Source: Malacoraja senta
Taxonomy: Eukaryota
DNA length: 64,000 bases
NCBI GenBank assembly: GCA_038087875.1
Contig: CM075978.1
Coordinates: 179,862,001-179,926,000, forward strand
Direction of reading: 5' to 3'
Positions within the stretch are counted from its first letter, which is position 1. Each line of letters starts with the position of its first letter. Both the position numbers and the translations under genes were made by a program. The notes under the pieces are model-generated. The model saw nothing but the letters and a program-made list of their open reading frames with translations, ran no database searches and was not told the origin of the DNA. Below are positions 20,855 through 59,890 of this stretch, one piece after another.

Positions 20855-21149
20855 GTGGGGAACAGATTTCAAACAACTTACAGCAAATGCCCAAAGAAGT
20901 GATTTTACACAAAGGAGGGAACACCACATTCTACTGCATATTCCCTATTTCTCGAGACCAATCTCGGGTAATAGTCAAATGGTGGAAACAAGGCGAGAAT
21001 GAATGCCAACGTGCAAGTACCGACGACAGGAAAAGTTTTGGCGTGAGTGGTCGAGCAAGCGGGTACTTTGAGTTGAAGAATGCAAAGATCCAAGATTCGT
21101 ATAGGAATGGCTCCAAGAAATTCAACCGGATCACGTCTAATAGTATATG
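20855..21149 (+). pseudogene. VJ-type IgV exon of paralogue A, disrupted by a net 26-nt deletion that removes the F-strand YWC
   Basis: Acceptor tttcctaacAG and donor GTAAGC. Phase-1 reading gives GEQISNNLQQMPKEVILHKGGNTTFYC..KWW..FELKNAKIQDS, then a frameshift. Aligns to V exon B. Confidence 0.9.
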
Positions 21150-21734
21150 GTAAGCGAAAAATAATTGGAGAAGGGAGAATTCATTGTGGAATATAATGGT
21201 TTGGTAAACCGAATCACTGTGAAGATGTCCTTTAATGCCTTTTGTGTATGTTATGTTCAGTATATCTGTTCTATCGCTCTATCTACATTCTGCGAACAAG
21301 AGGGTTGAAACTCCGCATGCCTATCCTCCTTTATGAAATTCGGCTCCACTTCACTCATCTCGCCAAAATTGGAAACGCGACGTGCGATTTTATAAAATCA
21401 AATTAATATTTTTAAAATTCCTTCAAAGTTCATCATGGATCTCTAACCTATGAAAGTCCAATAAGTGCAAGAAAATATTTCCTTGAATGTTCATTGAGTT
21501 GCAGTCGGTTGAATTGTGCAGTTTTGCCCAAACCAGGATGCAATCGCTCCAGTGTTGTCAGCATTAACTGAAAGTGAACAAATGCCCATGTTCTACTTCT
21601 TTAGTTGGAGAATGTTACTCAGATCACATATTTTAAATGACCTTGGCCAATTCACTCTGGCATCACCTAATTAATCTCCCTAAATTTTATAATTCTGACG
21701 TGAAGCGCAATGGAACTTAATATACAAAGTTCGT

Positions 21735-22460
21735 AAATTCATTTCGTTGCCTGCAGTCATACATATAATAATAAATGACAAAACACACAATAAACACAAA
21801 TTAACATCCACCACAGTGAGTTCACCAGGTACCTCCTCACTGTGATGGAGGCAAAAGTCTTAAAGTCTCTGTCTCTTCCCGCTTTCTTCTCCCTCTGCGC
21901 TGAGGCGATCCAGGCTTCTGATGCTGTGGCCCCGCCGGGCGACGGTAAGCCAGTCCAGCGGCCGAATCCGTGCTCCGCGACGGGCCGGCTCAAACTCCGC
22001 GGCCCGGGGTGGTCGAAGCTGCCGAAGCTACCGCCCTCCAGTCCAGCGGACGCAGCTGTAGTTGCGGGAGCCCCAGAAAAACAGGTCACCAACCTGTGAC
22101 CTGCGCGCTCCCGACGATGTCGTCGGGCCGAGCCTCCGGATTCAGGTCGCCACCAGTGTCCTCGGTCGCCACCGCCGGAACGCCACCGCAGCCCCGAAGT
22201 TGGCCAGCCTCGCGCTCCCGAAGATGCCGTCCACTGGGCCAGCTGCGGCCGAGCCTCCGGATTCAGGTCGCCACCGCCGGAACGCCACCGCAGCTCCGAA
22301 GCCGGCCAGCCTCGCGCTCCCGAAGATGTCGTCCACTGGGCCAGCTGCGGCCGAGCCTCCGGATTCAGGTCGCCACCAGTGTCCTCGGTCGCCACCGCCG
22401 GAACGCCACCGCCACCGCCGGAACGCCACCACAGCCCCGAAGTTGGCCAGCCTCGCGCTG
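21735..22460 (-). mobile_element. GC/CpG-rich non-autonomous retroelement-like insertion with an internal 102/121-bp VNTR; copy at 63479-64000 (truncated)
   Basis: gagcctccggattcaggtcgccacc recurs at 22130, 22251 and 22353. The AT-rich tail-like end lies at the left. It is absent from paralogue B's V-C1 intron. Confidence 0.6.
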
Positions 22461-22489
22461 GTAAGCATAGTCATAGGAGCAGACTAAGA

Positions 22490-22930
22490 CAATTCGACCC
22501 ATAGAGGCTACTGGGCCTTTCAATCATGGCTGGTCAATATTTCCATTTCAACCTCATTTTCCTGTATTCGACTGATAACCTTTCACATACATACTAAATC
22601 AATAATCAATACATACAAATACTGTCCACATCCATTCTATCCAGGTCTTTCACTATTTGGTAAGTTTCAATAAGGTCCCCCCCATATACCTCTAAACTAC
22701 AGATTGTATAGGCCCAGAACCGTCAATCGCTCAATATACGTTTACCCAATCGTCCCCTGGATAATTCTCGTAAATATCCTCTGAACTCTTTTCAACGCCA
22801 GAACACCCCTCCTCAGATATGAGGGCCCAAAACTGTTTACAATACTCAAACGCGGTCTGACGATTGCCTTATGAAGCCTCAGCATTACATCACTGTTTTT
22901 GTTTATATTCCATTCCTCTCACAATAAATG
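22490..22930 (-). mobile_element. Degenerate CR1 3' fragment
   Basis: Similar to the reverse complement of CR1 3' RT/UTR elsewhere in the window. Confidence 0.6.
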
Positions 22931-23014
22931 CTAACGTTTTTAGTTACCATATATTCGATTTTAAAGAGGTTGATAAACATCTGCTATTGTATTGGGAAAT
23001 TATGATAAATCAAT

Positions 23015-23500
23015 GTCAATAGACAATAGACAATAGGTGGAGGAGTAGGACATTCGGCCCCCTTCGAGTCAGCACCGCCATTCTCTGTGATCATGGTTGA
23101 TCTTACACAATCAGTACCCTGTTCCTGCCATCTCCCCATATCCCTTGACTCCACTATCTTTAATAGCTATATCTAACTCTCTCTTGAAAGCATCCAGAAA
23201 ATCGGCCTCCACTGTCTTCTGAGGTAGAGAATTCCACAGATTCACTACTCTGGGTGAAAAAGGTTTTCCTCATCTCGGTTCTAAATGGCCAACGCCTTAT
23301 TCTTAAACTGCGGCCCCTGGTACTGGACTCCACCAACATCGGCAAAATGTTTCCTGTCTATAACATGTCCAATCCATTAATAATCTTCTATGTTTCAATA
23401 AGATCCACCCTCATCCTTCTACATTTCAGTGTATACAAGTCGCAGTATACAGTCACTCCATTCTTTCAACATAGGACTGTCCCGCCATCCCGGGAGTTAA
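23015..23500 (-). mobile_element. CR1 3' fragment with (ACAATAG) tail
   Basis: caatagacaatagacaatagg...; minus strand STRGRSLRIRRWPFRTEMRKTFFTQ. Confidence 0.85.
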
Positions 23501-23689
23501 CCTTCGTCACAAAAATAGTGTCGAAATATTAGCAGAGTAAAACACAAATCCTGCCACCTATTCACATTACAATAGTAGAAGAAAAGGAAACGTACGTCTC
23601 AAGAACATTCACTTGAAAACGTTTCTCATCATAAACACGGTCTGAACATATTGCTACTACGGAGTCTCAGAGTTGCACAGCACAGGAAC

Positions 23690-24360
23690 AGCCTTCCGGT
23701 CCGCCACGTCCATCCGACCTATTTTTCCATCTAGACGAATTCAATTTTTAGGCCCTTAGCTACTACGAGTTGCCTATTAGAATGTCTGTGAATTCCTATT
23801 AACCTGGTGATTTTATCTGACTACAGCACCTACGCTGGATGCCAATTGCAGATAGCAACCTCTCTGTGTAAAAATCGTCCTTTCAGATTCCCTTTGAAAA
23901 CCCCTGTCCTTTAATTTTGGCATAAGCCTTCTACGATGGAAAAAAAACGTTCCATGTATCGTCCATTTATGCTTCTTGTAACTTGATATACGTCCACCAG
24001 ATCACACCACGGTTGTGTTCGCACCAGGGAAACAAACCGGGCTCAATCCCGGCAAATTCAAAATTCATACGGAATCTCTTCTGTACCTCCCCCCCTTCCC
24101 CTCCAAGGACAACCACGACGGGGACAATCACGACTTTCGTACAATGTGGAATCCAGAACTGCCGCGAAAACTCTAAATGTTAATTTAACGCTTTTGGTAA
24201 AGTTCTTACATAAGGTCCCAACATTTATATTTTATGTCCTCGCCTATGAAGGTATGTCGTCTGCACCATCTTGCCTATCCCTGTTGCCATATTCGCGGAA
24301 CCTTGGAGTTGAATCCAAAGGTCTCTCCATTGATCAACATTCCTTAGCGCTCTAATATAT
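23690..24360 (-). mobile_element. Old CR1 fragments
   Basis: Degenerate CR1 RT/3'-UTR similarity. Confidence 0.45.
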
Positions 24361-25063
24361 ACTGAATATTTCCACCATATTCGACTTCACAATGCGCATC
24401 ACCAGGCAGTTTTCGGGTGTACATTGCATTTGACTACGCTCAACCACTTCCCAGCTGATCTCTGACAGGCTACATTTCTGTTTAAAATTCTTGATGAGAA
24501 ATACAGCTGGTGTGAGGGGTTAAAAAGCCAGCAAGCTATTCACTGCTTGTCAACTGATTAGCGTAGAGAGCTGATGTGTGCAAAAACTCAAACACCAACC
24601 GCACTCTCCTGAAAGAGTTGATATAGTTCGCAGGATGTAATGTGTTGGTGAAAGAACATATTCTCCTCACCATTTTCTGTGCTCCTGCTCTGCTTCTTCT
24701 GCAAAACCGACTCGCTTTCTCACTTGATCAATAATGATGTGCAGAAAACTCATCGTTATCTTTGAGTAAAAAACTCAGAGAATCCCATCGTGGTAACATA
24801 TGTCGAGTTGTATTTGATTTATTATTCAAACTCTAATAAGATAAACCTACATAAATATTTGAAGAAAGCGTCATTAGCACTGAATTGGCAAGACTCGTGA
24901 AACACCGGCCTGGAAGAGAGATTTGGATCAGGTATGAGCACCTGGTCTAGGTAATATCAAATACATTTTCCAATGCGTCATTATAACAACGCACTCGAGG
25001 TTAATAATAGCAACCCGTCAACGGCGTAATGTGATTTAATTGTGTTCATGTTCTGTTCCGCAG

Positions 25064-25408
25064 CACTTCCAACTCCACTGAAAATTTTCACCAAGACTCG
25101 TGTAATGAATCCAGCCGCGAGTTGTATTCATGTGTGTGAAACAGCTGCATTCTATCCCGAGAATTTCACGCTTAATTGGTATACAAATGGGGTCGAAACA
25201 ACATCGGAAATACAGATCGAAACAAAGAAGAACGCCGAAGGACTGTATACGGTTTCTAGCTCTTTGATCGCGTTGCCGCCATTTCAGAGCGACAACAAAT
25301 ATACCTGTTTAATATCTCACGTCTTCCGCAATACATCAGCCCAGGCTGTCATCGCTGGTTCCGAATGTACCCAAGCTACGCTGCCAACAAAGCTATCTCG
25401 TACCCAAG
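25064..25408 (+). CDS. C1-set Ig exon plus stalk of paralogue A (open, 345 nt, phase 1-1)
   Basis: Acceptor ttctgttccgcAG. Reads (A)LPTPLKIF..CIHVCETAAFYPENFTLNWYTNG..GLYTVSSSL..YTCLISH..GSECTQATLPTKLSRTQ, with both canonical Cys and Trp. Donor GT at 25409. Confidence 0.85.
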
Positions 25409-25589
25409 GTACGATGCCAACAAAGCCATTACTTAAATGTAAACTACTATTTCTATTTTTTCCTGTCCGCGAGGAAAATTCACCTTAGTTCAATTAAAAG
25501 TTGCAGTTCTCTTTAATTAAAACAATGAAACCCAATCTCTTGCAAGACCGGATACAACAAACCTATTATCAATTACGTTTAAGAAAGAA

Positions 25590-25755
25590 CTGCAAATGCT
25601 GGAAAATCGGAGGTAGACAAAAATGCTGGAGAAACTCAGCGGGTGAGGCAGCATCTATGGAGCGAAGGAATGGGTGTCGTTTCGGGTCGAGACCCTTCTT
25701 CAGACTGATGTGAAGAAGGGTCTCGTCTGAGGAAGGGTCTCGACCGGAAACTTCT
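25590..25755. mobile_element. Penelope-terminus cassette with a minus-strand hammerhead-like motif (25676-25703) head-to-head with two partial plus-strand copies
   Basis: gtcgtttcgggtcgagacccttcttcag, then tgaagaagggtctcg and tctgaggaagggtctcgaccggaaac. Confidence 0.65.
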
Positions 25756-26865
25756 ATTATCAATCACATTCGTTTTCAATGAAAATGTCTTATTTGTTCT
25801 CCAAAATAGAAAAACAAATTTAAACATTTTGCCTTTCTACTGGGTAGTGTTGATGTTTCTTTCATGTTGCTTTAAAAAAGGTTTCCTAATGCACCGTTGA
25901 TTCCACACTTGGCGGCGCAACTGATTTCAGGTGCTTAGGTTTTCCCTCACGCTTCCTCGGTTTTTATCCTGATGCAGAATCTTTGCTTCACCGTGCTCAC
26001 CCTCGTTAAAATCGAACTACCCATCCTCCCTAAATTCCTTGGTACGTCATCCACTCCCACTGCCACCGTGACAAATTCAAGTACGGACCTAAAAGTAACG
26101 CCTTTCTAAACTGAAAGGACACCTTTAGCAGATTAAAACCGACAATTATGTTGTGTTATAATTGAAGAGAGGCTTCGATTGAGGCGTCCAACACTGCATT
26201 TCCCCCCAGCCTTTACTGACCACCAGCTTCTAATCAAACCACCTTCACCTGTATCCGCTTAGGTCTTTTCCAGCTTTCTCCCTCTACAACAACACATTTG
26301 AAGAAGGGTCTCAACTCAAATTGTCACCTATCCATTTTTCCGTAGATGCCAGTTGGCCTGTTGAGTTACTCCAGCATTTGGGTTGTTCTCAAGATCCGTT
26401 TATGCAGTTCCTTATATCTGCGTTGTTTTTGTTTGCATGTGTGTAGCTTGACAAAAATCTTAGTTCTACCACGGCGTGCCGACTTCCATATTGATTCACT
26501 AGCATTCTCATTAGAACAAGCGCACCGTTGAGCAAATGGAATTCGGCGATTGTCACTATTTTTTTTGCCATTCACTGCTTTGCACTGAAAAACGCGAACC
26601 ACCTGTGACTTTCCCTGAGGAAAGACCATAAGGTAAGTTGCGTATACCGTCCTGTATTGGGTTCAGCAAAGCAACTATTTCATTGTCCACAGCTGCTAAT
26701 TATTCGAAGCTCGATTAAGAATCTCCCCGTTCACTCCGGTGAAGAATAATCTCCTCAGAATAGTTTCCCAAGCAGACATCGTTTCTATACTCAGAAATAA
26801 TTAGCACAAGTTTCACCAATACACACACACACACTGGAATTAATCTGCTCCTATTATTTCTGCAG

Positions 26866-26971
26866 TTAATGCTTTCGCCTTCCACATTAGACATGCTCTG
26901 GCCTCTCTGGTGCCCCTGATCCTGATTGGTGTCGTTATTGGGACGCACTGTCAGTTGCCGTTTTATAAAAG
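26866..26971 (+). CDS. TM exon of paralogue A: (V)NAFAFHIRHALASLVPLILIGVVIGTHCQLPFYK(R)
   Basis: Same 106-nt exon and splice sites as 4949-5054, with a ctc>ccc (L>P) change in the helix. Confidence 0.8.
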
Positions 26972-27982
26972 GTACGTTATATATGAAAAAAATATGCTCG
27001 TACAATATCTCATGGAATTAGGAAAGATATTTGCGAGAGTTTATGTATTGCGCAGAGGATCATAAATATAATTATAATTTAAACCTGAAGGACGTGGACT
27101 GGGACTGTTAATTCTTTGAAATGCCAATGTATTCTTGGCAACTTAGCACGAAGAAGTAAGAAGATCTGGATGCAAGTAAATTAATAATAAGCATCCGTGA
27201 ATGCTCAAGTTGTTAATTCTCGTTAAATCCAATGAGCTGGCAAGGAATCCAAGAGCCGGTAAGATCACGCTCCCTCTCGTGCAACCTTTTTCTTCAATCA
27301 TTCGTCGCCGGTAATATTCAATATTGAAGAGTGTTGAAGCGCAGATATTTTATCAAACGCAAATGTTTCTCTAAAGTCTGCATCCAGACTGCTGAAACAT
27401 GCAAGTCATGCCAAGATGCATATTTTCCAGGAGAAGATGCGAATATCCGTCGTCTTTTCACTTTCAATTTGAAATTATTTCCCGAAGAATAGGCGAATAT
27501 AGTGTAAAATTACCTGTAAAATCATTATCATTTGTTTCTATGTTCCGCAATTGTATTTAAACCTAAAATGCAGAGATAAAAAACCGGCATAAATAAAATA
27601 AAACTTGAAAGAAATTCAGTGGTTCAGCCACCAGACCCAGATTCCCCCTCCCCCCTTCCCTCCCTCTTGCTCCCTCTCAATCCGGGTTTTCAACCAGCAA
27701 TGTAAACTGATGACTTCAGTCTCTACACATTTTACTTCACTCTTTTTTTAAACTTAAAATACTTACGGGTTTCAATCCCTTTGGAGTAAATGGGATAAAA
27801 GTAAACTTATGTCTTTACTGAAATTGTACCCATTTATAAATGTGATGTTATTTCTAACTGTTGAATATATTTTATCCGCCTGAGAAAGCATCCTTAAATT
27901 ATCTTCTATAGAACAAATGTTTGCATAATTAAATTGTACCTATAGTTAGCAAGGGTTTCTCCACCCTCTCTTGTTTGTGCAG

Positions 27983-28007
27983 GGTCTATGAAAAAGCCAT
28001 AAAGTAG
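27983..28007 (+). CDS. Tail exon of paralogue A, shortened by a 4-nt deletion: (R)VYEKAIK*
   Basis: Homologous to 6091-6166, but lacks TAAG, giving TAG at 28005-28007. Confidence 0.7.
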
Positions 28008-28747
28008 AGAGTGCTGGAAATCTCAAGCAGGATCAACCAAGCGACACCCAATGAACCTGACCACCATTGAAGCACCAGCCTTCCAGCGAATACTGTATGG
28101 CTACCCAAGATGATTGTAATTGTAAGATGTGCCTACCACAGCAGCCTACAAAAAGTAAACGTTAATATTTTGAAGTTCATCCTACAGACGAATTAGATAT
28201 AGGCACTGAAATTCAGGAAAAATAATATGTTCAGTATCGTTCGACGTACTCACGGCTACATTATTGACTGTGAGTTACTTGTGGGATTAATGATTACATA
28301 TTTGACGCCTTGCTTTACTACTATGAAAATTAATGCATATTTTGAAATATGTGTTGTGTTTAACTGATAAAGTAACTTTCCAAACGCTTTGAATTACGTT
28401 ATTATTATTAGTTACATAACTAAAATAGACGTTTTATGGTTACTTCTGATCGCTCGGTGATTTTCAATGTATTTGTTATTTCCGAAAGAAAAACTGTGAG
28501 GCGAGGGATTTAGGCACTATATTGTTCTGTCGCATCTCATTGTGACCTAAATACAAACAGTTTTCAGCATACCAAAGACTATAGACACTTTATTTTTCAC
28601 AACAACCACCACAACGTTTTGTCGAGAGTTTGATCAATTTCCATTGAAATCTATTCTGACAAAAATATATTTTTAACGCATTTATACTATAACCATTGTA
28701 CTACCGAGGTATTTTCTAAGATGGTAGAGCGTATATAATTCCGAGGC

Positions 28748-28753
28748 AATAAA
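28748..28753 (+). promoter_or_regulatory. Candidate poly(A) signal of paralogue A (homologue at 10496-10501)
   Basis: First AATAAA I found downstream of the stop codon. It is conserved in both paralogues. Confidence 0.3.
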
Positions 28754-29906
28754 CAATAGTTTAATTATTAGAAATTACCTTAAAAAGAACCAAATGCATG
28801 GTAGTGCAGGAGGTGGTCCGTAGTGTTCTGCTGTTAAGGTAGGATCATTAGTTTCCAAGCACTTTCAGGAACCTGATCGTTGTAGGAGAATAGCGAATTG
28901 AATCTGGCAATGTGCGCTTCAGTACCCCATGCCTAATAGTTGCAGTGAAACGCGGGAATGGCGCGGTTAATAGGGGTTCAGATCCAAAGCACTATATTCA
29001 TATGATTTGTTAACATGTACAGTATGTAACGAAATGTCTTCTGATCACCGCGGTGTATATATTACCGATCGCGTTGAGGCCACTTATTCTCCACGTCACA
29101 ACAAGGGGTCGTTGAGCTCCTTATCTACTCTGTTCAGTCGCTTTATATGCATTTAGACTCAACATTGATGAAGTAATTTGCAACAATCAAAATCACCTTT
29201 TTTTGCAATGTGTTAATAAAACCATTGGTCTGTCATTTTCTTCATACGCCTTGAGACCATTTCCCCCATTAATCTTTGGTTCCACCTACAGTTAAATGCA
29301 AGTTGATGTCAGGTTTATATTTTCGCTACCATTACATTTTATTCGTCAAATGTAATGAAGGCCCGTGGAGCAAGATGGCAATGATTGTATCATTGCATTA
29401 GTCAGTGAGCAGAATATTGTAAATGACTCTTCACAGCAGTGCTGTTGATATTCGACCACATCATCAAATGTTCCGACGGCAATTACCCATATAGGATGTG
29501 TCCAATCTTTGCAAACATGGGTAATATAGTTAATTAACGAGAAAACGGCTGCCACACAATAATTTGATCCAGCGTCATGAAATTCCTGCATATCCCATTT
29601 CCGCCCAACCAGCATGCAAAGATCAAATTAATACATTTACCTGGAAAAAAAACACCCTTGACAGTATTAAAAATAAACCTGCCGGTACTTCTAGAAGGCT
29701 TTTCCATGAAATTCGCCAGAATGTCTTGCTCCAGTGTTCATTTGACTCCAGCTCCACCATTTTCAACACAGTAAAGAGGTGGAGAAGTAGACCATTTGGT
29801 ATGTTTCGCTGCTCTTTCATCCAGCATAACGCCGAATAATCAGTGCCAACTTCCTGCATTATTCTTATTTAATTCGAATACATTCATGCATAACGTATTG
29901 TTCCTG

Positions 29907-30038
29907 NNNNNNNNNNNNNNNNNNNNNNNNNNNNNNNNNNNNNNNNNNNNNNNNNNNNNNNNNNNNNNNNNNNNNNNNNNNNNNNNNNNNNNNNNNNNNN
30001 NNNNNNNNNNNNNNNNNNNNNNNNNNNNNNNNNNNNNN
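29907..30038. other. N-run (132 nt) abutting the 3' tail of a Rex1/Babar element
   Basis: Seen directly. Confidence 0.9.
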
Positions 30039-31037
30039 TATTCACATACAATGAATTTCCCTTGGTGCTCCGCCCACAAGTAACAACATGACATACAGTG
30101 ACAGTTACGAATGACTCAGAAAACACTAAACATTAATAATAATAAAACATTAATGATAAAACACCATCGATCAAGCATGTGAACCAACAAAATGCCAGAT
30201 CAAAGGGAGGCTACAGAGTTTTGGCTGTTGAGTAGAGCAACTACTCGTGGATAAAAAGTGTTTTTATGTCTGACTGTGGCAGCTTTGACAGTCCGGAGTC
30301 GCCTTTCAGAGGGAAGTGATTCAAAGAGTTTGTGGCCAGGGTGAGAGGGGTTAGTGATGATCTTGCCCACTCGCTTCCTGGCCTTTGCAGTGTACAGCTC
30401 ATCAATGGAGGGAAGGTTGCAGCCAATAACCTTCTCAGCTGATCGGACGATTCGCTGCAGCTTCTAGGTGTCGTGCTTGGTGGCTGAGCCAAACCAGACC
30501 ATGATGGAGAAAGTGAGAACAGACTCTATGATGGCCGTGTAGAATTGGACCATCATTGCTCGTGGCAGATTGTGTTTCCTCAGCTGCCATAGGAAGTACA
30601 TCCTCTGTTGTGCCTTTTTGACTGTGGAGTCGATAGTAGCCCCCCACTTAAGGTCCTTGGAGATGATGGTTCCCAGGAACTTAAAAGACTCCACAGATTT
30701 GACTCTGGTGTTTTTGATAGTGAGTGGGGTGAGGGGAGGGGGAGCTCTCCTAAAGTCTACAATCAATTCCACTGTCTTAAGAGCATTGAGTTCTAGGTTG
30801 TTGCGATGGCACCAGTATGCCAGCTGTGACACTTCCTGTCTGTAGGCAGATTCCTCCCCATCCTGGATCATTCCAATCAGGGTTGTGTCATCCGCAAACT
30901 TGAGAAGCTTGACAGAGGTGTCTGTGGAGGTGCAGTCATTGGTGTAGAGGAGAGGAGAGAGTATGCAGCCTTGCGGTGCTCCTATGCTGAGTGTTTGCGG
31001 GTCCGAGATGTGCTTTCCCAGCCTAACATGCTGCTTC
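30039..31037 (-). mobile_element. Rex1/Babar-clade LINE 3' fragment (RT C-terminus and 3' UTR), cut by a gap
   Basis: KLLKFADDTTLIG..DGEESAYRQEV..WC..NNLELNALKTVELIVDFR..KFLG..VKKAQQRMYFL. Confidence 0.85.
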
Positions 31038-31237
31038 NNNNNNNNNNNNNNNNNNNNNNNNNNNNNNNNNNNNNNNNNNNNNNNNNNNNNNNNNNNNNNN
31101 NNNNNNNNNNNNNNNNNNNNNNNNNNNNNNNNNNNNNNNNNNNNNNNNNNNNNNNNNNNNNNNNNNNNNNNNNNNNNNNNNNNNNNNNNNNNNNNNNNNN
31201 NNNNNNNNNNNNNNNNNNNNNNNNNNNNNNNNNNNNN
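31038..31237. other. 200-N gap, probably a fixed-size scaffolding join
   Basis: Exactly 200 N. The two flanks are unrelated repeats (Rex1/Babar on the left, a SINE 3' half on the right). Confidence 0.8.
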
Positions 31238-31350
31238 CAGGTTAATTAGCCATCAAACATTGCTTGGAGTGTGCTGGAAGCTGACGAAAACAAGGAGAGA
31301 ATAAAACAGGATTAGTGTAAGTGGCTGATTAATGGTTAGCATCGACTAAT
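31238..31350 (+). mobile_element. V-SINE 3' half
   Basis: gttaattagc...aggattagtgtaagtggctgattaatggttagc resembles the 3' half of 18443-18724. Confidence 0.45.
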
Positions 31351-31515
31351 TAAATTGCTTTAAATGGTCCGCCCATTGCTTTATTACACTATGCCTCTGC
31401 AACTCCTCTGCGGTTGACACATCTAAACGTGAACGTGAGATTTGGTGCATTTAGTTAAATCTTAAGTGCACGTGAGATTTAGCACTCGTTTGCTCTAAAA
31501 TTGGCAAACATACAG

Positions 31516-34151: not shown

Positions 34152-34611
34152 ACGGATCAAATTATTCTTGCAACCCTCAGTTACAAGATACAAATCATCC
34201 TTCATATAATGTAAACCACGCCCTGATAGGACGTAATAAGAATACCCTTTAATTATAATTTTCACCACTCTGCTATCTGCGGCCGATTTGATTCTAGAAG
34301 ACATAGCGAATCCAACGGATCAAATGATACTAGCAACCTCTATTACAGGATGTGAATCATCCTTCATAGAATGTAAACCACGCCCTCACTTAACAGTTGC
34401 CAAAGCAGCTTTCTGCGGACAAATTTGTTGTAGCTGTTGGCCGGAATGGAAATCGGTATAATATTTAACTTACTGATCATCGGTGGGAATATTTACATAG
34501 GTACAGCTTTGTTCATTATTCCATGTGCTTATTTATAAACTAATTGTAAGGTCTACCGTCCGTATGCCGTCATCAACTGAATTACCTTTCCTTGGTTGTG
34601 TTTCCTAACAG

Positions 34612-34931
34612 GCGGGGAACAGATTTCATACATGTAGAGCAAGTGCCCAAAGAAGTGGTTTTACTCAAAGGAGGGAACGTCACATTCTACTGCATATTCC
34701 CCATCTCTCAAGACCAATCTTGGGTAAGAGTCAAATGGTGGAAACAGGGCGAGAATGAATACCAACGTGCAAGTACCGACGACAGGAAACAATCTGGTGT
34801 GATAGGTCGAGCAAGCGGGTACTTCGAGTTAAAGAATGTAAAGATCCAAGATTCTGGAGTGTATTGGTGTTCGGTGACGCGAAATGGAATGGCTCCAAGA
34901 AATTCAACCGGATCACGTCTAATAGTATATG
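34612..34931 (+). CDS. VJ-type IgV exon of paralogue B. The domain is intact, but a 1-nt deletion near the 5' end leaves it in frame only from the second AG (exon start 34623).
   Basis: FIHVEQVPKEVVLLKGGNVTFYCIFP..VKWWKQG..YFELKNVKIQDSGVYWCSVTRNGMAPRNSTGSRLIVY has Cys, Trp, DxGxYxC and a J-like G strand. Donor GTAAGC. Confidence 0.9.
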
Positions 34932-35899: not shown

Positions 35900-36160
35900 A
35901 TATTTGAGATACGTCCATTAGGTCACCACATAGTCTTCTTCGCACTAGGCAATCGCTTACTTATCATATCCAAACCAATCGTATCCATTCCACCCTCATT
36001 ACCAAAGCCCGTAATCCAAGCAGAATTATAGTGAATCTCTTCTGCAGTCCATCCAACACAATCGCATCCTTCGTATAATTTGAGATCCAGTATTGAACAA
36101 ATTGCGTCGAATGCCAATTAATCAATCTTTGTATAGACCCCACATACGCTTCCAACATTT
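35900..36160 (-). mobile_element. Old CR1 RT fragment
   Basis: QFVQYWISNYTKDAIVLDGLQKRFT on the minus strand. Confidence 0.55.
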
Positions 36161-36800
36161 ATATTTTGTGTCGTGACATATGAAAACATTCATATTTGGT
36201 GTCGTGGCCAAGCAGAACGTATGGCCTCTGTACCATCTGTGCTCCCACACTTGGGAACCACGGACATACACGCAATGGTACACCTGTTCGTCAACATTCC
36301 TCAACAATCTATCATTTACTCCCTCCGGTCGGTCCGCATGATCTACATCGGTGAGACCAAGCGGAGGCTTGGCGATCGTTTCGCCGAACACCTCCGGTCG
36401 GTCCGCAATAACCACTTGACCTCCCGGTGGCTCAGCACTTCAACTCCCCCTCCCATTCCGTATCTGACCTCTCTGTCCTGGGTCTCCTCCCATGGCCACA
36501 GCGAGCAACACCGTAAATTGGAGGAAATGCACCTCATATTCCGCTTGGGCAGTCTACATCCTGGGGCTTGAACATTGAATTCTCCCAATTCTGCTAGCCC
36601 TTGCCTTCCCTTCATCAGCCCTCTGGTTGTCTCCTCCCCTCCCCCAGCCCTCAGGCTCCTCCTCCGCCTTTTTCCTTTTTTCCTTTCTTCTCCCCACCCC
36701 CTATCAGTCTGAAGAAAGGTTTCGGCCGAAACGTTGCCTATTTCATTCGCTCCATAGATGCTGCTGCACCCGCTGAGTTTCTCCAGCATTTTTGTGTACC
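36160..36800 (+). mobile_element. Penelope-like element 3' part (GIY-YIG) with a hammerhead-like motif at 36709-36735
   Basis: IYIGETKRRLGDRFAEHLRSV..RKLEEMHLIFRLGSLHP; CUGAAGA-AA-[GGU UUCG GCC]-GAAA-CGUU. Confidence 0.85.
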
Positions 36801-37523
36801 TACCATTTACTCTCTATTTTTCTCCCCTATGTGACCTCACGATATAATCACCTGGTACGTTTCGAGGTTAAATTTCATTTGACGACACTCCAACCAAAAG
36901 TTCAGCTGCTTTCTGATAGATTACATTGCTGCTAGAGATTCTTGGATAAGATTAATGTGAGGGGTTTCAAAGCCCGCAAGTTACCCACTGGTGGTCAATT
37001 TCTTGGCTCAGCGAAATGAAGTGCGAAGAAAATTCAAAATTTTGTCGCGCCAAACTGCAATAACTGATATAGGAGGTATGGTGTTGATATATTCCGTTTC
37101 TAAAATAATATATTCCTTTCACCAATTTATGTGCCCCCTCTCCCTCTCCTGTGTGCTTTTTTTGTTGCAAATCCTACTGGCTTTCTCATTTGATCATCAA
37201 CGAAATGCTGAATATTTTTCACTGTGCTCAAGAAACAGAGAGTATCGGCGTGGTAGCCGATCTCGAGGTTTATTTGGTTTATTACCTGAACTCCAAGAAA
37301 AGAAACCTAAATCGGTATTTGAAGTAGCTTCATTATCGCTGGGTGAGCGAACTCCGTAAATACCGGCCTCAAAGTGAGATTTAGATCGGGCATCAGTACT
37401 TGGTCTAGGTAACAACAAAACCATTTTCAAACTGCGCCATTATAATTAACTGGCTCGTGGTTAATAAAATCAATCTTTCAATGACGCAAATTCATATAAT
37501 GTTGTGCCCTTTCTGTTCCGCAG

Positions 37524-37836
37524 CTCTTCCAACCCCACTGAAGATTTTCGCCAAGACCCCCGAAATGAATTCAGCCGGGACTTGTATCCTTGTGTGTGAA
37601 ACGGCTGCATTTCATCCCAGGAATTTGACACTTACCTGGTATAAGAACGGCGTCGAAACTACATTGGAAATATTTACTGAAACAACGCAGAACTCCGAGG
37701 GACTGCATGAGGTTACCAGCTCCTTAATCGAGACGCAGCCAGTGCAGAACGACGCCAAATATACGTGTTTAGGATCACATGCCCTCTCTCTATACTTCAG
37801 CAAAGGCTAACATTTCTGTTTCCAAATGTCGCCAAG
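37524..37836 (+). CDS. C1-set Ig exon of paralogue B, with a +1 frameshift near the 3' end (stop at 37808-37810)
   Basis: (A)LPTPLKIF..CILVCETAAFHPRNLTLTWYKNG..YTCLGSHALS. The exon is 313 nt versus 312 nt for A's ancestral exon. Donor GTAAGA at 37837. Confidence 0.85.
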
Positions 37837-37941
37837 GTAAGAGGCCAACGGAGATATTTCTTGCTAAGTTAGCAGAGATGAATCATACTTGTTCGCGAAG
37901 AAAATGCACCTTAATTCAATTGGAAATATCAACTAGAGCGT

Positions 37942-38018
37942 GAAATTAACGTTTAATATTTAATATCAGCCACTCTTGGACCAAGAGTGTCTGATATTAA
38001 ATATTAAACGTTAATTTC
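37942..38018. repeat. 77-bp near-perfect palindrome
   Basis: 38-bp arms with 1 mismatch and a single-base centre. Confidence 0.95.
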
Positions 38019-38289
38019 GGAAACGGAATTTCGGAAACGTCTTGGTGCAATACCGAATGCAACAAAACGGTTAACAATTACATTAGTTTGCATTCTAAAT
38101 CTTACATTTATCCTCTAAAGTATTCCTCACAATTTATATTTATTAGCATGTAATATTAAGACACCCTTTGTGTTCCTTTAAAAAAATCTACACACGCCAT
38201 GAACGTAAAACATAGAAAGATACTGCACAGAAACGGCCCATCGGCCCGTTATGCGTCGGAAACAATGCCACGATAAACTAATCGGAGAT

Positions 38290-38385
38290 GTCCTGATTCT
38301 TTAGGGAATGGGGGTTCCCCTCTTCCATTCTAGGTGAGGCTCTCACTAGGGTCTCCTCGATATCCCGCAGCTCCGCTCTTCCTCT
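38290..38385 (+). mobile_element. Penelope-like RT-thumb fragment
   Basis: Reads [28 protein letters not shown]. Confidence 0.5.
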
Positions 38386-38394
38386 TTATAACAA

Positions 38395-39006
38395 GAGGAA
38401 TCGAATATGGGAGCAAAGAGGTCCTTCTGAAGTTGTACAGAGCCCTAGTGAGACCACACCTGGAGTATTGTGTGCAGTTTTGGTCCCTAATTTGAGGAAG
38501 GATATTCTTGCTAGTGAGGGAGTGCAGCGTAGGTTTACAAGGGATGGCGGGCCTGTCATATGCGGAGAGAATGGAGCAGCTGGGCTTGTACACTCTGGAG
38601 TTTAGAAGGATGAGAGGGTATCTCATTGAAGCAATATAAGATTGTTAAGGGTTTGGACGAGCTAGAGGCAGGAAACATGTTTCCGATGTTGGGGGAGTCC
38701 AGAACCAGGGCCACAGTTTAAGAATACGGAGTAAGCCATTTAGAACGGAGACGAGGGAACACTTTTTCTAACAGAGAGTTGTGAGTCTGTGGAATTCTCT
38801 GCCTCAGAGGGTGGTGGAGGCATGTTCTCTGGATGCTTTCAGAGAGGGCTAGATAGGGCTCTTAATAATAGCGGAGTCAGGGATATGGGGAGAAGGGAGG
38901 GATGGGGTACTGATTGGGGATGATCAGCTATGATCACATTGAATGGTGGTGCTGGCTCGAAGGGCCGAATGACCTACTCCTGCACCTATTGTCTATTGTC
39001 TATTGT
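38395..39006 (+). mobile_element. CR1 3' fragment with (CTATTGT)n tail
   Basis: [19 protein letters not shown], followed by a CR1 3' UTR. Confidence 0.9.
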
Positions 39007-39029
39007 CTACCCCCCCCCCATCCGTAACA

Positions 39030-39530
39030 AGGACAGAGCCCCCCTTGTCCCCACCCAGGAGTCCTGTCCTGGGCCTCCTCCATTGTCAGAGTGAGGCCCA
39101 GTGCAAATTGGAGGAACAGCATCTCATATTTCGCTTGGGTAGTTTGCACCCCAGCGGTATGAACGTTGATTTCTCTAATTTCAGATAGCCCTTGCATTCT
39201 CCCTCCTTCCGCTCCCCTTCCCAGTTCTCCTACTAGTCCTACTGTCTCCGCTTACTTTCTATATTTTTCCCGCTCCACCCCACACCAGTCTGAAGAAGGG
39301 TCTCGACCCAAAGCATCACCCAATCTTTATCTCAGATGCTGCGCACCCAATGAGTTATTCCAACATTTTGTGTCCCCTGCTAGTCCTACTGTCTCTGCCT
39401 ACTTTCTATCTTTGTCCAGCCCCCTCTCCCGACATCAGTCTGAAGAAGGGGCTCGACCTGAAACGTCACCCATTCCTTCTCTCCATTGAATTGCCTCACC
39501 CGCTGAATTACTCAAACGTTTTGTGTCTTC
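39030..39530 (+). mobile_element. Penelope-like 3' fragment with tandemly repeated terminus (two hammerhead-like copies; 39440-39467 is the better one)
   Basis: KLEEQHLIFRLGSLHP, then a ~150-bp tandem duplication containing agtctgaagaaggg. Confidence 0.75.
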
Positions 39531-40887
39531 CATGATAAACTAATCTCATTTGCTTGCACATGGTCCATATCACTGCATTCCCAGCATAATAATTTGGCTA
39601 TCAAAAAGCCTTTTGCATGCCACTATCGTATCTGCCTCCATCGCCCCACCTAGAAGCTCGTTCCATGCACCCACCATTCACTGTGTCAAAAATCTTGCAC
39701 CGCAGATCTGTTTGTCTGTCTGTCCGTCCGTCCGTCCGTCCGTACGTACGTCCGTACGTACGTCCGTCTATCTGTGTTTGCCCATGTGATCCTGGAACTA
39801 CACCAAAACGGTACACGGCACCACCTTACTCACCATTGTCCTGCGGTCGTTTGTGTCAACTCGTTCAGATTGATGTTATATTTCACGTTATTGACATTTA
39901 AAAATTTACAAAACCCCACTTTGAGAACAATAACTTGGCAGTTGCTGTACCAGCTGCTGAGAGATTCTGGCAGTTTCCAGCTATGGCATCACAATTGGCT
40001 CTTGCAGTCCTCCACCAGACAATGACATCACAATGGGATCTCATTTATATAAGCTGCTGTTAACAGTCCTCCACCCGAGAATGACATCACAATGGGATCT
40101 CAGCTGCCAATCAACAGTGTTGGGATAAGCTCCACCCAGTGCAATGAGAGATTTCTTACATTGTTGTAAGGAGACAGAGGTGTGGGGGAGGGGAGGAGAA
40201 GAAATGTTATTTAAACATTGTGTTTAGTGGGGGAGTGCGATAGGGGAGAGGTGAGGGAGGGAGTGACTAAGGGGAGGGAAAAGGAGAGGGAGGGAGAGGT
40301 GAGGTAGGGAGTGGAGGAGGGTAGGAGGCGAGGGGAGAGAAGAGGGAGGGTGAAGACGAGGGGGGTGTAGTGTATGAGCCATGCCTGTGCAGTTGGGCCA
40401 AATGGGTGAGTGGTGGAATATTGCATTGGGGAACAGATTACGTTGGGGGAACGGGTGAGTGGTGGTAATGTGTTTGCATTGGGGAAACAGATGAGTGGTG
40501 GAATAGTGCAATTTCGTTCAAACCATTCTGTTTGAATGACAACAAAAGGCATTCTATTCTATTCTATTCTATATTGCGTGTGGGAGCGGGGCCCAACGGG
40601 TCAGGTTGGTAAGGAGGGCAGAGGGGTTATGGAGGGTGGGAGGGAGTGACTGAGGGTCGGGCAAGGAGAAGGAGGGAGAGGTGAGGGAGGGAGTCATGGA
40701 GGGGAGGAGGAGGAGAGGGGAGAGAAGAGGGAGGGTGAAGAGGAGGGGTGGGAGTGTTAGGGATGAGGGGAAATGAGCCGCGCCCAGGGGCGGAAACCAC
40801 TATCAAAACGTGGGGGGGACACATTTCTTTGCTGGCCCCGCGCATGCGCAAGCACGCACGCACGCGAACGCATGCGCGCGCACGCAC

Positions 40888-40929
<42 letters not shown>

Positions 40930-43900
40930 GAGGCTTTGGAGGCTTCAGCCGTGGGCCCTGTGAACTGTAACATCGGAGCTGACCTGTTTAAGAAAGAACT
41001 GCAGATGCTGGAATAATCGAAGGTTGACAAAAATGCAGGTGAGACTGCATCTATGTAGAGAAGGAATAGTTGACATTTCGGCTCGAAATCCTTCTACAGA
41101 CCAGATCTGAGGAAGGGTCTCGACCCAAAACGTAACCCATTCTTTCGCTCCATAGATGCAGCCTCACCCGCTGAGTTTCTCCAGCATTTTTGTCTACCTT
41201 CGGGAGCTGACCTGGTTGGTGACCGAATCTGAACTCCAGCAACAGCAGCTTCATCCGCCCCGAATCGTGGGGCTTGAATCAACCCGTTTGCGGGGCCTTT
41301 TGTCGCCCGGCGCGACTTTAAATCGGCCGGCGGAGGCTTCAACATCAGGAGCCTCGATGGCCTCGATGCAGCAGATTGATTTTAAGCCACGCTGGGCGAT
41401 GAAAGGCCCTGCGAACGGGCCGATTCAGCCATTAGAAAGCGTCTGATACCCACTTGAATCTTTCAAAAGCTACGTTGTGATAAATAACACAAACAAATAA
41501 AACTGAAGCTAATAAAGGTAAACAGAAGAACCAACCTTGGAGGGGGGAGAGAGAGAGAGAGATGGGAAAAACATACTAAAAACGTGAGTGACCTGAATGA
41601 GGGACCTGCCTGCAAGCCAGCCAGGAAACCCATTCGACCGGAGCCTAATGACCTGACCCTTTTAAATCCGATGCTCGTTTAAATCTTTCCCATCAACGAA
41701 TACATCCAATTAATTCAAATGGTAATTGTACCCGCATCAGGCAGCTTTAAGAAATTCTCCATGAATACCTTCAGTAATACTTGTAGGTCAAAACACAATT
41801 GGTGACACATCGTGTTAATACGATGTTAATGGAGGCATTTAACAAGCGCTTAACAGTGACACCCCTGACTGTTTCGCGGAAAGCAGAGATTTTAATAGAT
41901 TTTTTTCACCAAATTTCGAAATCCAGATTACAAAACATGGGGGGGATTGTCTCCCACCTCTCAAAACATGGAGGGGGCGTGTCCCCTGTCCTCCTGGGAT
42001 TTCCGCCCGTGCCCACGCCTGCACGGTTGGGGGAATGGGTGAGTGGTGGATTATTACATTGGGGGAACGGGGCCCAACGCATCCCACTTGGTCCAGTATN
42101 NNNNNNNNNNNNNNNNNNNNNNNNNNNNNNNNNNNNNNNNNNNNNNNNNNNNNNNNNNNNNNNNNNNNNNNNNNNNNNNNNNNNNNNNNNNNNNNNNNNN
42201 NNNNNNNNNNNNNNNNNNNNNNNNNNNNNNNNNNNNNNNNNNNNNNNNNNNNACTTCCAGTCTCTGTTGTAATTAAATTTGCGCAAAAAACCTACATTGC
42301 TGGATTTTTGCCACCTTACTCACTGTTCTCCTCTGCTCCAAGCCACCAAGTTTTGTTCCGGTCGGTGAAAAATGAGAAAAGCTATGAAGGTTTTAAAAAT
42401 CGTGAGATCAGCAGATTGGTCTTCTCGCCTGTCAGTCACAATGAAGATAACGCCCCTTCCAGCACCCGCTGGATAATAAAGCCGGGACTTTATAATAATA
42501 GAGGCGGGGCTGAGTAAACAAGCCGTGCTGATTGAGACCGCAAGAGTGGAGTCGGAAAAAGGCGCTGTGTGGGGTCGAGTAAGCCGCTGTGTGGAGTCGG
42601 GAAAGCCGCTGTGCGGAGTCGGGGAAGCCGCTGTGCAGAGTCGGGAAAGCCGCTGTGTGGAGCCGGGAAAGCTGCTGTGTGGAGCCGGGAAAGCCGCTGT
42701 GCGGGGTCGGGAAAGCCGCTGTGTGGAGTCGGGAAAGCCGCTGTGTGGAGTCGGGAAAGCCGATGTGTGGAGTCGGGTAAGCTGCAGTGTAGAGTCGGGA
42801 GGTGCTGTGTCGGGAGCACCCCCTCCCCCACACCCCCTTCCCCCACACCCCCCTTCCCCACACAAACCCCTTCCCACACACACACACACCCCTACCCTAC
42901 TCCCCACACCCTCCCCCAAACCCCCCTCCCACACACACACCCTCCCCCACTCCCCCACACCCAAGTCTGGGGATATGGTGAGAAGGCAGGAACGGGGTAC
43001 TGATTGGGGATGATCAGCCATGATCACATTGAATGGCAGTGCTGGCTCGAAGGGCCGAATGGCCTACTCCTGCACCTATTATCTATTGTCTATTGTATCA
43101 CAAAACCCCGCCAAAATGGTACACGACAGTGCTACAATGTTTGGCACACCTTACTCAACATTGTCCTGGGATGTAAATGAAACAAGTTTTGTTTGGATTG
43201 ATGTTATATGTTACAAGTTATTGACATTTTAATCTTTACAAAAATCACTTTTCAAACCACTTTTCCACTGGCCCAGCCGGTCAGCCGCGTTCGACGTCAC
43301 AATGACGTCACTATGTGATCCGGAATCTGATTTACATTTAAAAATCGCGATTTTCAAAAGAACTCAATCAAATTCTTCCGTTTTCATTAACAGCTAACAT
43401 TATGTTTAGATTATTTTAAAGAAAAAAAAACGCGATTTTCATTGAGAATTTAATTTGAAAAAACATCGCGAATTTCATTGTGGTGGGGTAGGGGTGGTGA
43501 GGAGTGGGGGAGCAGGGGATAGAGGGAGAGGAGGGGGCTAGGAAGGGGAGAGGGGATATGGAGGGAGGGAGAGAGTGGCTGTGGGTAGGGGAAAGGAGTG
43601 GGAGGGAGAGGTGAGGGAGGGAGTGCTGGGGCAAGAGGGGGAATAGAGGAGGATAGGGGTAGGACGAGGGATGGCGAGGCGCAGTTGTGGGAGGGTTGCC
43701 ATGAATCGCGTCACAACGGGGATCTCTAGCGTCACAACGGGAACCCCTCAGCCGCGCCTGCGCAGTTGGGGGATATGGGTCAGTGGCGGAATATCGCCTT
43801 GGGGGACGGGCCTGGTCTTGTCTCCTATAAACGTTGCCCCTGTCGACTTAATACTATGTCCCTATTCTTTGATAGTGCTATCCTGGCAAAAAGATTCTGA

Positions 43901-45266
43901 CTGGCTACACTATCTATGTCTCTCATGATTTTGTATACTTCTATCAGGTCTCCCTTCAATCTTCCACATGTTTGTTCAATCTCCCCTTGCAGCAAATGCC
44001 CCTTAATCTAGGCAAAATTTGTGTAAACTTCTTCACATCCTTCCTGTAATGAGACGGCAATAACTGCACGTAATATTACAAATGCTTTCTAGCTAAAGCG
44101 CTAGGGAGCCGGATCATGACTCCCCGACTAATGTTCAATGCCGCGACCAATGAAGGCAAACATGCCAGCCGAACACCCCTTCTTTATCACTCTTTCTGCT
44201 GGTGTTGTCACTTTCAGGAAGCTATTGATCAGGACCCCAAAATTCATCTGTATTATTGTAAAGGGCCTTGCCATTAACTGTATACTTTCCCTTTACATTT
44301 AACCCTGAAATATATCGATTTAAAATTGCATCTGGCGATTGTTAATTGAGATATCGAATTTAGCTATCAATTTTATAAACAATGGTGGGAACAAATTCTC
44401 CAGTTTTCCAATAATGTAACACTCTCCCTTCCCCGTATTTCTTTCGTGTGCCACTCCCCCCATCCCAGTACGCACACATTTCTTCCGCTGTTCCGCCCTT
44501 CTCTCCCCTACCCCCCCGCCCCACTGTCTTCCAACTATATCCCTCCACCTGGCTTTACATTTCATTCCTGTTCTATCTTTAACTGTCAGCCTTTTATCTG
44601 CATTTTATTTCCAGCCATTCCCCACCACCAGCTTCTAATACAACCCCCTTCATCTGTGTCCGCTTAGGTCTTTTCCAGCTTTCTCCCTCTACTACAACGC
44701 ATTTAAAGAAGTGTCCCAACCCAAACCTATCTATTTTTCCGTAGATGCCGGCTGGCCTGTTGAGTTACTCTAGCATTTGTGTTGTTCTCAAGACCCGTTT
44801 ATGCAGTTCCTTATATTTGCGTTGTTTTTGTTTGCATGTGTGGGGCTTGACAAAAATCCTAGTTCTACCACGGCGTGCCGACTTCCATATTGATTCACCA
44901 GCATTCTCATTTGAACAAGCGCACCGTTGAGCAAATGGAATTCGGTGATTGTCACTATTTTTTGCCATTCACTGCTTTGCACTGAAAAACGCGGACCAAC
45001 TGTGACTTTCCCTGAGGAAAGACCATAAGGGAAGTTGCGTATACCGTCCTGCATTAGGTTCAGCAAAGCAACTATTTCATTTTCCACAGCTGCTAATTAT
45101 TCGAAGCTCGATTAAGAATCTCCCTGTTCACTCCGGTGAAGAATAATTTCCTCAGAATAGTTTCCCAAGCAGACATCGTTTCTATACTCAGAAATAATTA
45201 ACTAGCACAAGTTTCACCAATACACACACACACACGGGAATTAATCTGCTCCTATTATTTCTGCAG

Positions 45267-45372
45267 TTAATGCTTTCGCCTTCCACATTAGACATGCTCT
45301 GGCCTCTCTGGTGCTCCTGATCCTGATTGGTGTCGTTATTGGGACGCACTGTCAGTTGCCGTTTTATAAAAG
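45267..45372 (+). CDS. TM exon of paralogue B
   Basis: Same exon as 4949-5054. It joins the C1 exon donor (37836) in phase 1. Confidence 0.8.
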
Positions 45373-46408
45373 GTACGTTATATATGAAAACAATATGTTC
45401 GTACAATATTTCATGGAATTAGGAAAGATATATGCGAGAGTTTATGTATTGCGCAGAGGATCATAAATATAATTATAATTTAAACCTGAAGGACGTGGAT
45501 TGTGACTGTCAATTCTTTGAAATGCCAATATATTCTTGGCAACTTAGCATGAAGAAGTAAGAAGATCTGGATGCAAGTAAATTAATAATTAGCATCCGTG
45601 AATGCTCAAGTTGTTTATTCTGGTTAAATCCAATGAGCTGGCAAGGAATCCAAGAGCCGGTAAGACCACGCTCCCTCTCATGCAACTTTTTTCTTCAAAC
45701 ATTCTTCGCCGGTAATATTCAATATTGAAGAGTGTTGAAGCGCAGATATTTTATCAAACGCAAAAAGTAAAGTTTCATGTTTATCTAAAGTCTGCATCCA
45801 GACTGATGAAACATGCAAGTCATGCAAGATGCATATTTTCCAGGAGAAGGTGCTAATATCCGTCGTCTTTTCACTCTCAATTTTAAATTATTTCCCGCAG
45901 AATAGGCGAATGTAGTGTAAAATTACCTGCAAAATCCTTATCATTTGTGTCTATGTTCCGCAATTGCAATTAAACCTAAAATGCAGAGATAACAAACCGG
46001 CATTAATAAAATAAAACTTGAAAGAAATTCAGTGGTTCAGCCAGACCCAGATTCCCCCTCTCCCTCCCCTCTCTCTTGCTCCCTCTCAATCCGGGTTTTC
46101 AACCAGCAATGTAAACTGATGACTTCAGTCTCTACAAATTTTACTTCATGCGATGAGTCCATTCACTCTTTTTTAAAACTTAAAATGCTTACGGTATTCA
46201 ATCCCTTTGGAGTAAATGGGATAAAAGTAAACTTCTGTCTTTACTGAAATTGTACCCATTTATAAATGTGATGTTATTTCTAATTGTTGAATATATTTTA
46301 TCCGCCTAAAAAAGTATCCTTAAATTATCTTCTATAGAACAAATGTTTGCATAATTAAATTGTACCTATAGTTAGCAAGGTTTTCTCCACCCTCTCTTGT
46401 TTGTGCAG

Positions 46409-46484
46409 GGTCTATGTAAGAAAAAGCCATAAAGTAGAGAGTGTTGGAAACCTCAAGCAGGATCAACGAAGCGACACCCAATGA
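46409..46484 (+). CDS. Cytoplasmic-tail exon of paralogue B (24 aa plus stop)
   Basis: Same exon as 6091-6166. Confidence 0.75.

Positions 46485-59854: not shown

Positions 59855-59858
<4 letters not shown>

Positions 59859-59890
<32 letters not shown>

Follow-up and report, generated by a model that had tools for sequence, protein, structure and literature searches.

Current models of how immunoglobulins (Ig) and T-cell receptors (TCR) originated take as their raw material non-rearranging genes in which a V domain with a J-like strand is followed by a C1 domain (VJ-C1 genes; PMC10751288, PMC12227049). In elasmobranchs such genes include UrIg, which is antibody-like, and UrIg2, which has 9-11 C domains (PMC12227049); PRARP genes are placed in chicken and other non-mammalian vertebrates by Fu et al. 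2019, as cited in PMC10751288. Cartilaginous fish are the oldest lineage having both systems, the non-rearranging VJ-C1 genes and Ig/TCR. Here we analyse a stretch of 64,000 nucleotides from the skate Malacoraja senta (GenBank assembly GCA_038087875.1, contig CM075978.1, positions 179,862,001 to 179,926,000, forward strand), called the window below, in which two genes of this type, A and B, lie in tandem. We hold it to be probable that they are two paralogues, one intact (gene B) and one broken (gene A), of a chondrichthyan multigene family of non-rearranging receptors of the immunoglobulin superfamily (IgSF), gene B being an activating-type member. Both genes are built from a split leader, a V domain that is joined in the germline and carries a J-like G strand, a single C1-set domain, a short stalk bearing a free cysteine, a transmembrane (TM) helix and a short tail. 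The exons of gene B are as follows.

34446-34500, forward strand, leader exon, MEIGIIFNLLIIGGNIYI plus 1 base, GT donor, phase 1
34623-34931, forward strand, V exon, intact, 309 nt, phases 1-1
37524-37836, forward strand, C1-set exon, 313 nt as assembled, 312 nt when corrected with reads, phases 1-1
45267-45372, forward strand, TM exon, NAFAFHIRHALASLVLLILIGVVIGTHCQLPFYK, 106 nt, phases 1-2, with an embedded Arg
46409-46484, forward strand, tail exon, phase 2, (R)VYVRKSHKVESVGNLKQDQRSDTQ then TGA at 46482-46484, without an immunoreceptor tyrosine-based inhibitory or activation motif (ITIM or ITAM)

The leader of gene B is split by an intron of 122 nt, after which the V exon begins. Its GGNIYI stretch has a counterpart, SGNIYIA, in the signal peptides of two Hypanus relatives, P0002 and P0014, and the TM exon is homologous to the TM segment of P0002. 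Pfam recognises a V-set domain at 34.9 bits (cut-off 26) and C1-set domains at 35.9 and 37.5 bits (cut-off 21), with the C1 motifs FYP and YTCxVSH present. The arrangement that an earlier note on this DNA had proposed, a non-rearranging V-C1-stalk-TM-short tail receptor, was thus borne out by domain matches and exon structure. The 3′ end of the 309-nt V exon (34901-34930) encodes the J-like G strand NSTGSRLIVY; across 29 aligned V domains of the family, N-G-(T/S)-G-(S/T)-x-L-x-V is nearly invariant. No CACAGTG was found in or adjoining any V exon, and no combination of heptamer, 12/23 spacer and nonamer was present anywhere in the 64-kb window, so that the fusion of V and J-like strand in one exon with no recombination signal sequence (RSS), also noticed earlier, stands. 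The locus therefore has what distinguishes non-rearranging VJ-C1 genes of the IgSF (V and J-like strand in one exon, no RSS, C1-set domain, split leader, phase 1 domain exons), and not the separate RSS-flanked V and J segments of rearranging Ig/TCR loci.

As assembled, the C1 exon of gene B is frameshifted, with a premature stop after YTCLGSHALSLYFSKG. Public read contigs were placed on 36900-38150: X1 and X2 come from two samples of organism A (99+% alike), the same organism as that of the window, and X3 from a related organism, B. The extra C that the assembly has at 37782 (CCC run 37782-37784) is missing from the contigs of X1, X2 and X3, and position 37773 reads T, not G, in all three, giving YTCLVSH. 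Between 34000 and 38150, all insertions and deletions separating X1 and X2 from the assembly are homopolymeric (34020, 34247, 35902, 36252, 37029, 37096, 37156 and 37782), and such a confinement to homopolymers is the signature of long-read consensus error. With both read-supported changes, spliced gene B measures 858 nt, a clean open reading frame (ORF) of 285 codons plus stop, and its F-G region, YTCLVSHASLYTSAKANISVSKCRQ, aligns with gene A and with the family. We conclude that gene B, once the homopolymer error of the assembly is removed, is predicted to be intact and to encode a type I membrane glycoprotein of 285 amino acids. The protein database holds no protein from the window, which fits an annotation defeated by the assembly frameshift; one-base homopolymer errors probably kept gene B out of annotation. 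This means that errors of this kind can make intact immune genes look like pseudogenes, and that reads need to be checked before pseudogenisation is called.

Evidence for splicing came from X3. One of its contigs, 821 nt long, covers exactly the C1 exon of gene B at 96% identity, then departs from the genome on both sides. Its 5′ loose end, AATTCAACCGGATCACGTCTAATAGTATAT, is the last 30 nt of the V exon, which confirms the V donor at 34931, and its 3′ loose end, TGCTTTCGCCTTCCACATTAGACATGCTCT, is the start of the TM exon; a close relative thus uses both predicted junctions, V-C1 and C1-TM. The earlier note had held that a lack of spliced reads joining these exons would speak against it, and this contig joins V, C1 and TM at the predicted boundaries, albeit in a related organism and in a run whose library type is not on record. 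Since the TM exon sequence is common to genes A and B, the contig does not prove the TM exon of gene B across the gapped 7.4-kb intron, and the continuity of the gene over that intron is beyond what the window sequence can show. As for the consistent exon phases reported earlier, they hold for gene B in V (1-1), TM (1-2) and tail (phase 2) and for the C1 exon of gene A (1-1), in the C1 exon of gene B after read correction (1-1), and fail in the V exon of gene A, which is broken.

The reach of the family was examined with an exhaustive HMMER search using the V domain of gene B (V_B), a check akin to one that the earlier note had suggested. It yielded 253 proteins at E<=0.001, of which 62 reached E<=1e-10, with relatives of V-C1 architecture that were chondrichthyan in every case checked; in about 100 of the retrieved sequences C1 follows V within a single stretch, and most of these have the J motif. 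Closest of all is Hypanus sabinus XP_059849417 (66% identity in V, 50% in C1), whose AlphaFold2 (AF2) model contains V, C1 and a TM helix, with a mean predicted local distance difference test score (pLDDT) of 82. All 44 clusters whose source was read are chondrichthyan, apart from distant multi-V proteins. The family occurs in rays (Hypanus, Hemitrygon, Mobula, Narcine), skates (Amblyraja, Leucoraja), sharks (Scyliorhinus, Mustelus, Heterodontus, Heptranchias, Chiloscyllium, Stegostoma, Hemiscyllium, Carcharodon) and a chimaera (Callorhinchus); outside chondrichthyans, the nearest matches belong to reptiles and amphibians and are multi-V receptors instead of V-C1 proteins. When the family alignment and the C1 alignment were used in word-index searches, the matches listed were chondrichthyan proteins only, a form of result that leaves the absence of bony-vertebrate relatives undemonstrated. 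The expanded elasmobranch family announced earlier is thus real as to expansion and lineage specificity, and too narrow as to range, which extends past elasmobranchs to the chimaera. One distant skate member, P0021 (Amblyraja radiata XP_032892405), has a duplicated C1, V-C1-C1 as in SIRPs, and a 153-residue tail with ITIM.

Automatic names within the family are discordant (SIRP-alpha-like, SIRP-beta-like, tapasin-related-like, Ig lambda-like, CD276, NCR3LG1-like, MHC II beta-like, PD-L1-like, TCR beta-like), and a literature search found no published description of it, in agreement with the earlier suggestion that the family may be unnamed. In a FastTree phylogeny of ectodomains, gene B joins ray sequences, and this group is sister to shark sequences. 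The subclade of gene B thus roughly tracks the species tree (skate, rays, sharks); judging from this tree, gene B looks like a conserved elasmobranch lineage inside a much larger multi-clade family, and not like a young product of birth and death, the mode of evolution that had been proposed for the family.

The membrane end of gene B suggests how the receptor might signal. Its TM segment, AFAFHIRHALASLVLLILIGVVIGTHC, has an Arg about 7 residues into the helix, in the outer third (HIRHALASLV...); the closest relative shares this Arg (WILRCAMGVL), in a stretch that is helical in its AF2 model. The tail of gene B has 31 residues, and neither ITIM nor ITAM. In the family, tails come in two forms, long with LTYAxL or TEYAxL (ITIM, or immunoreceptor tyrosine-based switch motif, ITSM) or short with an embedded Arg, and an ITIM is lacking in 12 of the 16 members whose TM has an embedded basic residue (Fisher p ~0.05, with a crude rule applied to related sequences). 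Both halves of a paired receptor system, ITIM tails versus charged TM with short tail, are thus found at the level of the family, and the window genes have the Arg module only. Given the embedded Arg and the short ITIM-free tail, we predict that gene B is of the activating type within a family of paired receptors. NKp30 and some other receptors with a TM Arg pair with FcR-gamma or CD3-zeta. The Arg of gene B would recruit an ITAM-bearing adaptor (FcR-gamma, CD3-zeta, DAP12 or the like); the opposing signal would come from relatives whose tails are long and carry ITIM/ITSM, and disulfide-linked dimers may form through the stalk Cys, Cys223. The family thereby offers candidate innate receptors, of natural killer (NK) or myeloid type, for sharks and rays, where such receptors are poorly known.

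Gene A, upstream of gene B, has the same parts.

20643-20697, forward strand, leader exon, METSMIFHLLPVVGNICR, open
20866-21149, forward strand, V exon, broken, 284 nt
25064-25408, forward strand, C1-set exon, intact, 345 nt, phases 1-1
26866-26971, forward strand, TM exon, open, 99% identical to the TM exon of gene B
27983-28007, forward strand, tail, (R)VYEKAIK then stop, with a 4-bp deletion relative to gene B

In its V exon, a 26-bp deletion takes out DSGVYWCSVT and with it the canonical F-strand Cys, a 1-bp insertion lies near the 5′ end, and the phases are inconsistent; both assembled copies of the exon carry these defects. A 26-bp deletion is not a homopolymer error, and gene A (20643-28007) is therefore most likely a real pseudogene, and not one produced by the assembly. 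At the 3′ end of its C1 exon, a 33-bp tandem duplication (25376-25441) has shifted the splice donor and made the stalk 11 residues longer; the free stalk Cys is found in SECTQ in gene A and in SKCRQ in gene B. Identity between the two genes varies by segment: 80% in the leader, 91% in the V exon, 77% in the C1 exon, 99% in the TM exon and 95% in the intron between TM and tail. Synonymous divergence (dS) is 0.18 in V and 0.53 in C1, with a ratio of nonsynonymous to synonymous divergence (dN/dS) of 0.38 in C1. The TM end being far more alike than C1, the 3′ signalling module was duplicated or converted at a far later time than the C1 exon, and the mosaic pattern fits an exchange of exon blocks within the tandem cluster. 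Between 26206-29792 and 44611-46732 plus 50356-51863, the segment comprising TM, tail and 3′ flank shows 92-99% identity with its introns counted; the gene B copy is interrupted by a 3.6-kb insertion containing a retroelement ORF (47171-48094, minus strand).

Self-comparison revealed that the window is made of 1.6 copies of a 40.3-kb tandem unit, 1-22256 matching 40319-64000 at 99.7-99.9% identity, and that N gaps lie at an equal relative position in both copies (1786-1934 and 42100-42252). Unit copy 2 contains, at 59858-61265, a private 1.4-kb long interspersed nuclear element (LINE), 5′-truncated and starting with poly(T), with none at 19521-19535 of copy 1; the two copies are therefore distinct molecules. 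This LINE is about 70% similar to the element at 47374-48028. Either the unit was duplicated in tandem very recently or two haplotypes have been set one after the other, and the copies, 99.8% alike, may be an assembly artefact.

This repeat bears on the number of genes, for which the earlier note had given at least three paralogues. A six-frame search with a profile of 28 relatives detected just five Ig exons in the window, three for V (20.9, 34.6 and 62.6 kb) and two for C1 (25.0 and 37.5 kb). The V exon at 62.6 kb, inside the 40.3-kb repeat unit, is 100% identical to the one at 20.9 kb and is a copy of it, which leaves two distinct paralogues in the span. A divergent Ig exon, considered as a candidate for the third paralogue, was ruled out by the six-frame search with the family profile at E<=10. 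Overall, what had been observed earlier is partly confirmed, being largely right and needing correction on paralogue count and intactness, and its interpretation is in part supported, at the level of the family. The other features of the window are these.

4949-5054 and 6091-6166, forward strand, TM exon and tail exon of the gene B copy of the preceding unit
29907-30038, assembly gap, intergenic, between the gene A stop (28007) and the gene B leader (34446)
31038-31237, assembly gap, intergenic, between the gene A stop and the gene B leader
42100-42252, assembly gap inside the C1-TM intron of gene B
62387-62441 and 62610-62893, forward strand, leader and broken V exon of copy A′ in the next unit, identical to gene A

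Every exon is at least 1.9 kb away from a gap. A retroelement ORF fragment with a PF09004 match (30464-30871, minus strand) sits between the two intergenic gaps. A GC-rich minisatellite of 22 bp, in 11.5 copies, is found at 2228-2482 and at 42546-42800, the latter in the C1-TM intron of gene B and adjoining its N gap; a 102-bp repeat (2.1 copies, 22164-22377) lies downstream of the V exon of gene A, and both repeats yield long spurious ORFs on either strand. A strong excess of G over C (skew of 0.37-0.46) was measured at 16001-18000 and 56001-58000, where tandem repeats were not detected. No conserved flanking genes are present in the window.

The genes could be assigned to a family already known. 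Over the V-C1 part of solved proteins, the family profile scored 68.1 bits on Ig lambda, 67.6 on Ig kappa, 61.7 on SIRP-alpha D1-D2 and 56.1 on UrIg2, values too close to tell the families apart. V-only and C1-only profile searches of solved structures were rejected as a family ranking, being dominated by multi-domain chains with additive scores. That these are the SIRP genes of cartilaginous fish, orthologous to that family and SIRP-beta-like, is suggested by the many relatives that NCBI names 'tyrosine-protein phosphatase non-receptor type substrate 1-like' or 'SIRP beta-1-like', by the alignment of the profile to SIRP-alpha D1-D2, to which D3 adds 48 bits, by a VPPT-L linker motif and GxGTxLxV in common, by the presence of ITIM and TM-basic forms within the family, and by the V-C1-C1 layout of the skate relative P0021. 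However, the V-C scores of Ig lambda and Ig kappa (68 bits) lie slightly above that of SIRP-alpha, so that no specific affinity is seen; gene B has one C1 and not two; and the automatic names also include tapasin-related, Ig lambda, CD276, NCR3LG1, MHC II beta and PD-L1. We therefore consider SIRP orthology unlikely, if still worth keeping in mind. Foldseek placed the AF2 model beside antibody light chains in the PDB and, in Swiss-Prot, beside PD-L1, B7-H6, TCR beta, SIRP-alpha, TAPBPR and butyrophilins, neighbours that make up the generic V-C two-domain class. The proteins would be B7/butyrophilin-like ligands instead of receptors if one followed the V domains of PD-L1, which are the best single-domain solved matches of V_B (E ~7e-6 to 1e-4), the top structural matches in Swiss-Prot (PD-L1, B7-H6, CD276 and butyrophilins, template modelling scores of 0.55-0.62) and the relatives automatically named CD276, NCR3LG1 or PD-L1-like. 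This is very improbable in our view: the C domain matches C1-set at 36 bits versus 23 for the CD80-like C2-set_2 and 19 for the butyrophilin C2-set_3, the G strand has a J-like motif, ITIM/ITSM tails and an embedded TM Arg are receptor features, and the order of the structural scores mostly reflects the interdomain angle of the predicted model. As to ancestry, the special tie to the pre-RAG antigen receptor raised in the earlier note did not emerge, Ig lambda, Ig kappa, SIRP-alpha and UrIg2 scoring about equally. We give little credence to a reading in which the family is an undescribed chondrichthyan-wide VJ-C1 lineage from the pre-RAG stock of Ig/TCR and UrIg, its members still forming ITAM-coupled, disulfide-linked dimers like antigen receptors; if true, it would be a living model of the antigen receptor before the RAG transposon split the V exon.

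It could also be that nothing here is functional, both genes being decaying pseudogenes and the 40-kb units an assembly artefact. Gene A is plainly disrupted, the frame of gene B is shifted in the assembly, the window proteins are absent from the protein database, identity between the units is 99.7-99.9% and their N gaps coincide in relative position, and no RNA run of the organism itself was among the public runs found, which were only genome-like ones for organism A. Against this, three independent read sets restore the frame of gene B, whose V, C1, TM and tail are otherwise open and conserved, the dN/dS between A and B is 0.38 in C1, a spliced transcript-like contig 96% identical to gene B exists in X3, and the private LINE makes the two unit copies distinct molecules; this explanation seems to us quite unlikely. 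Several observations nevertheless weigh against the reading that we favour, of one intact activating-type gene and one broken paralogue in a family of non-rearranging receptors. The assembled individual could truly carry a null allele at 37782, in which case the extra C would be no error. Transcription is seen through the 96%-identical contig of another organism only, and this contig could in principle be a processed copy. The link between embedded Arg and lack of ITIM is weak, and the window contains no ITIM-type tail exons and no TM exons beyond the three known ones, so that an inhibitory partner is absent from it. In the V domain, Pfam I-set also exceeds its cut-off; the first Gly of the GxG bulge is a Ser (NSTGSRLIV) in gene B, in gene A and in the X3 transcript, which makes the bulge motif degenerate in the skate subfamily; and the domain is short, with a C′-C′′ region of about 14 residues in the AF2 model of the closest relative, as expected for a compact V domain if the model is right.

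We file the two genes as non-rearranging VJ-C1 receptors of SIRP-like design, and not as SIRPs. They resemble SIRPs in having a non-rearranging V with a J-like G strand followed by a C1-set domain, in being type I membrane proteins, and in the existence of ITIM forms and of short-tailed forms with a basic TM residue. They differ from them by a single C1 exon per gene, whereas SIRPs have two C1 domains, and by profile score they are no closer to SIRP than to Ig light chains. The TM Lys of SIRP-beta is in mid-membrane; the Arg of gene B is near the outer TM end. With Ig light and TCR chains the skate genes share the V-C1 layout, phase 1 exons, split leader, a GxGxxLxV-like G strand and a membrane-proximal Cys, but their V and J are in one exon without RSS, identity is about 20%, and the first Gly of the bulge is replaced by Ser. 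The likeness to UrIg and UrIg2 of elasmobranchs lies in the germline-joined VJ exon, the canonical split leader, the C1-set domain and the lack of rearrangement, and the V-C1 part of UrIg2 is among the best solved matches (56 bits); the skate genes depart from UrIg by their single C1, TM and short tail, and by belonging to a large multigene family where UrIg is a single gene. NKp30 (NCR3) is, like gene B, built on a non-rearranging VJ-type domain, with an Arg near the outer TM end and a short tail, but has no C1 domain. A large chondrichthyan-wide family of paired-type VJ-C1-TM genes, with no stable name, would be the third such gene set beside UrIg/UrIg2 and NKp30.

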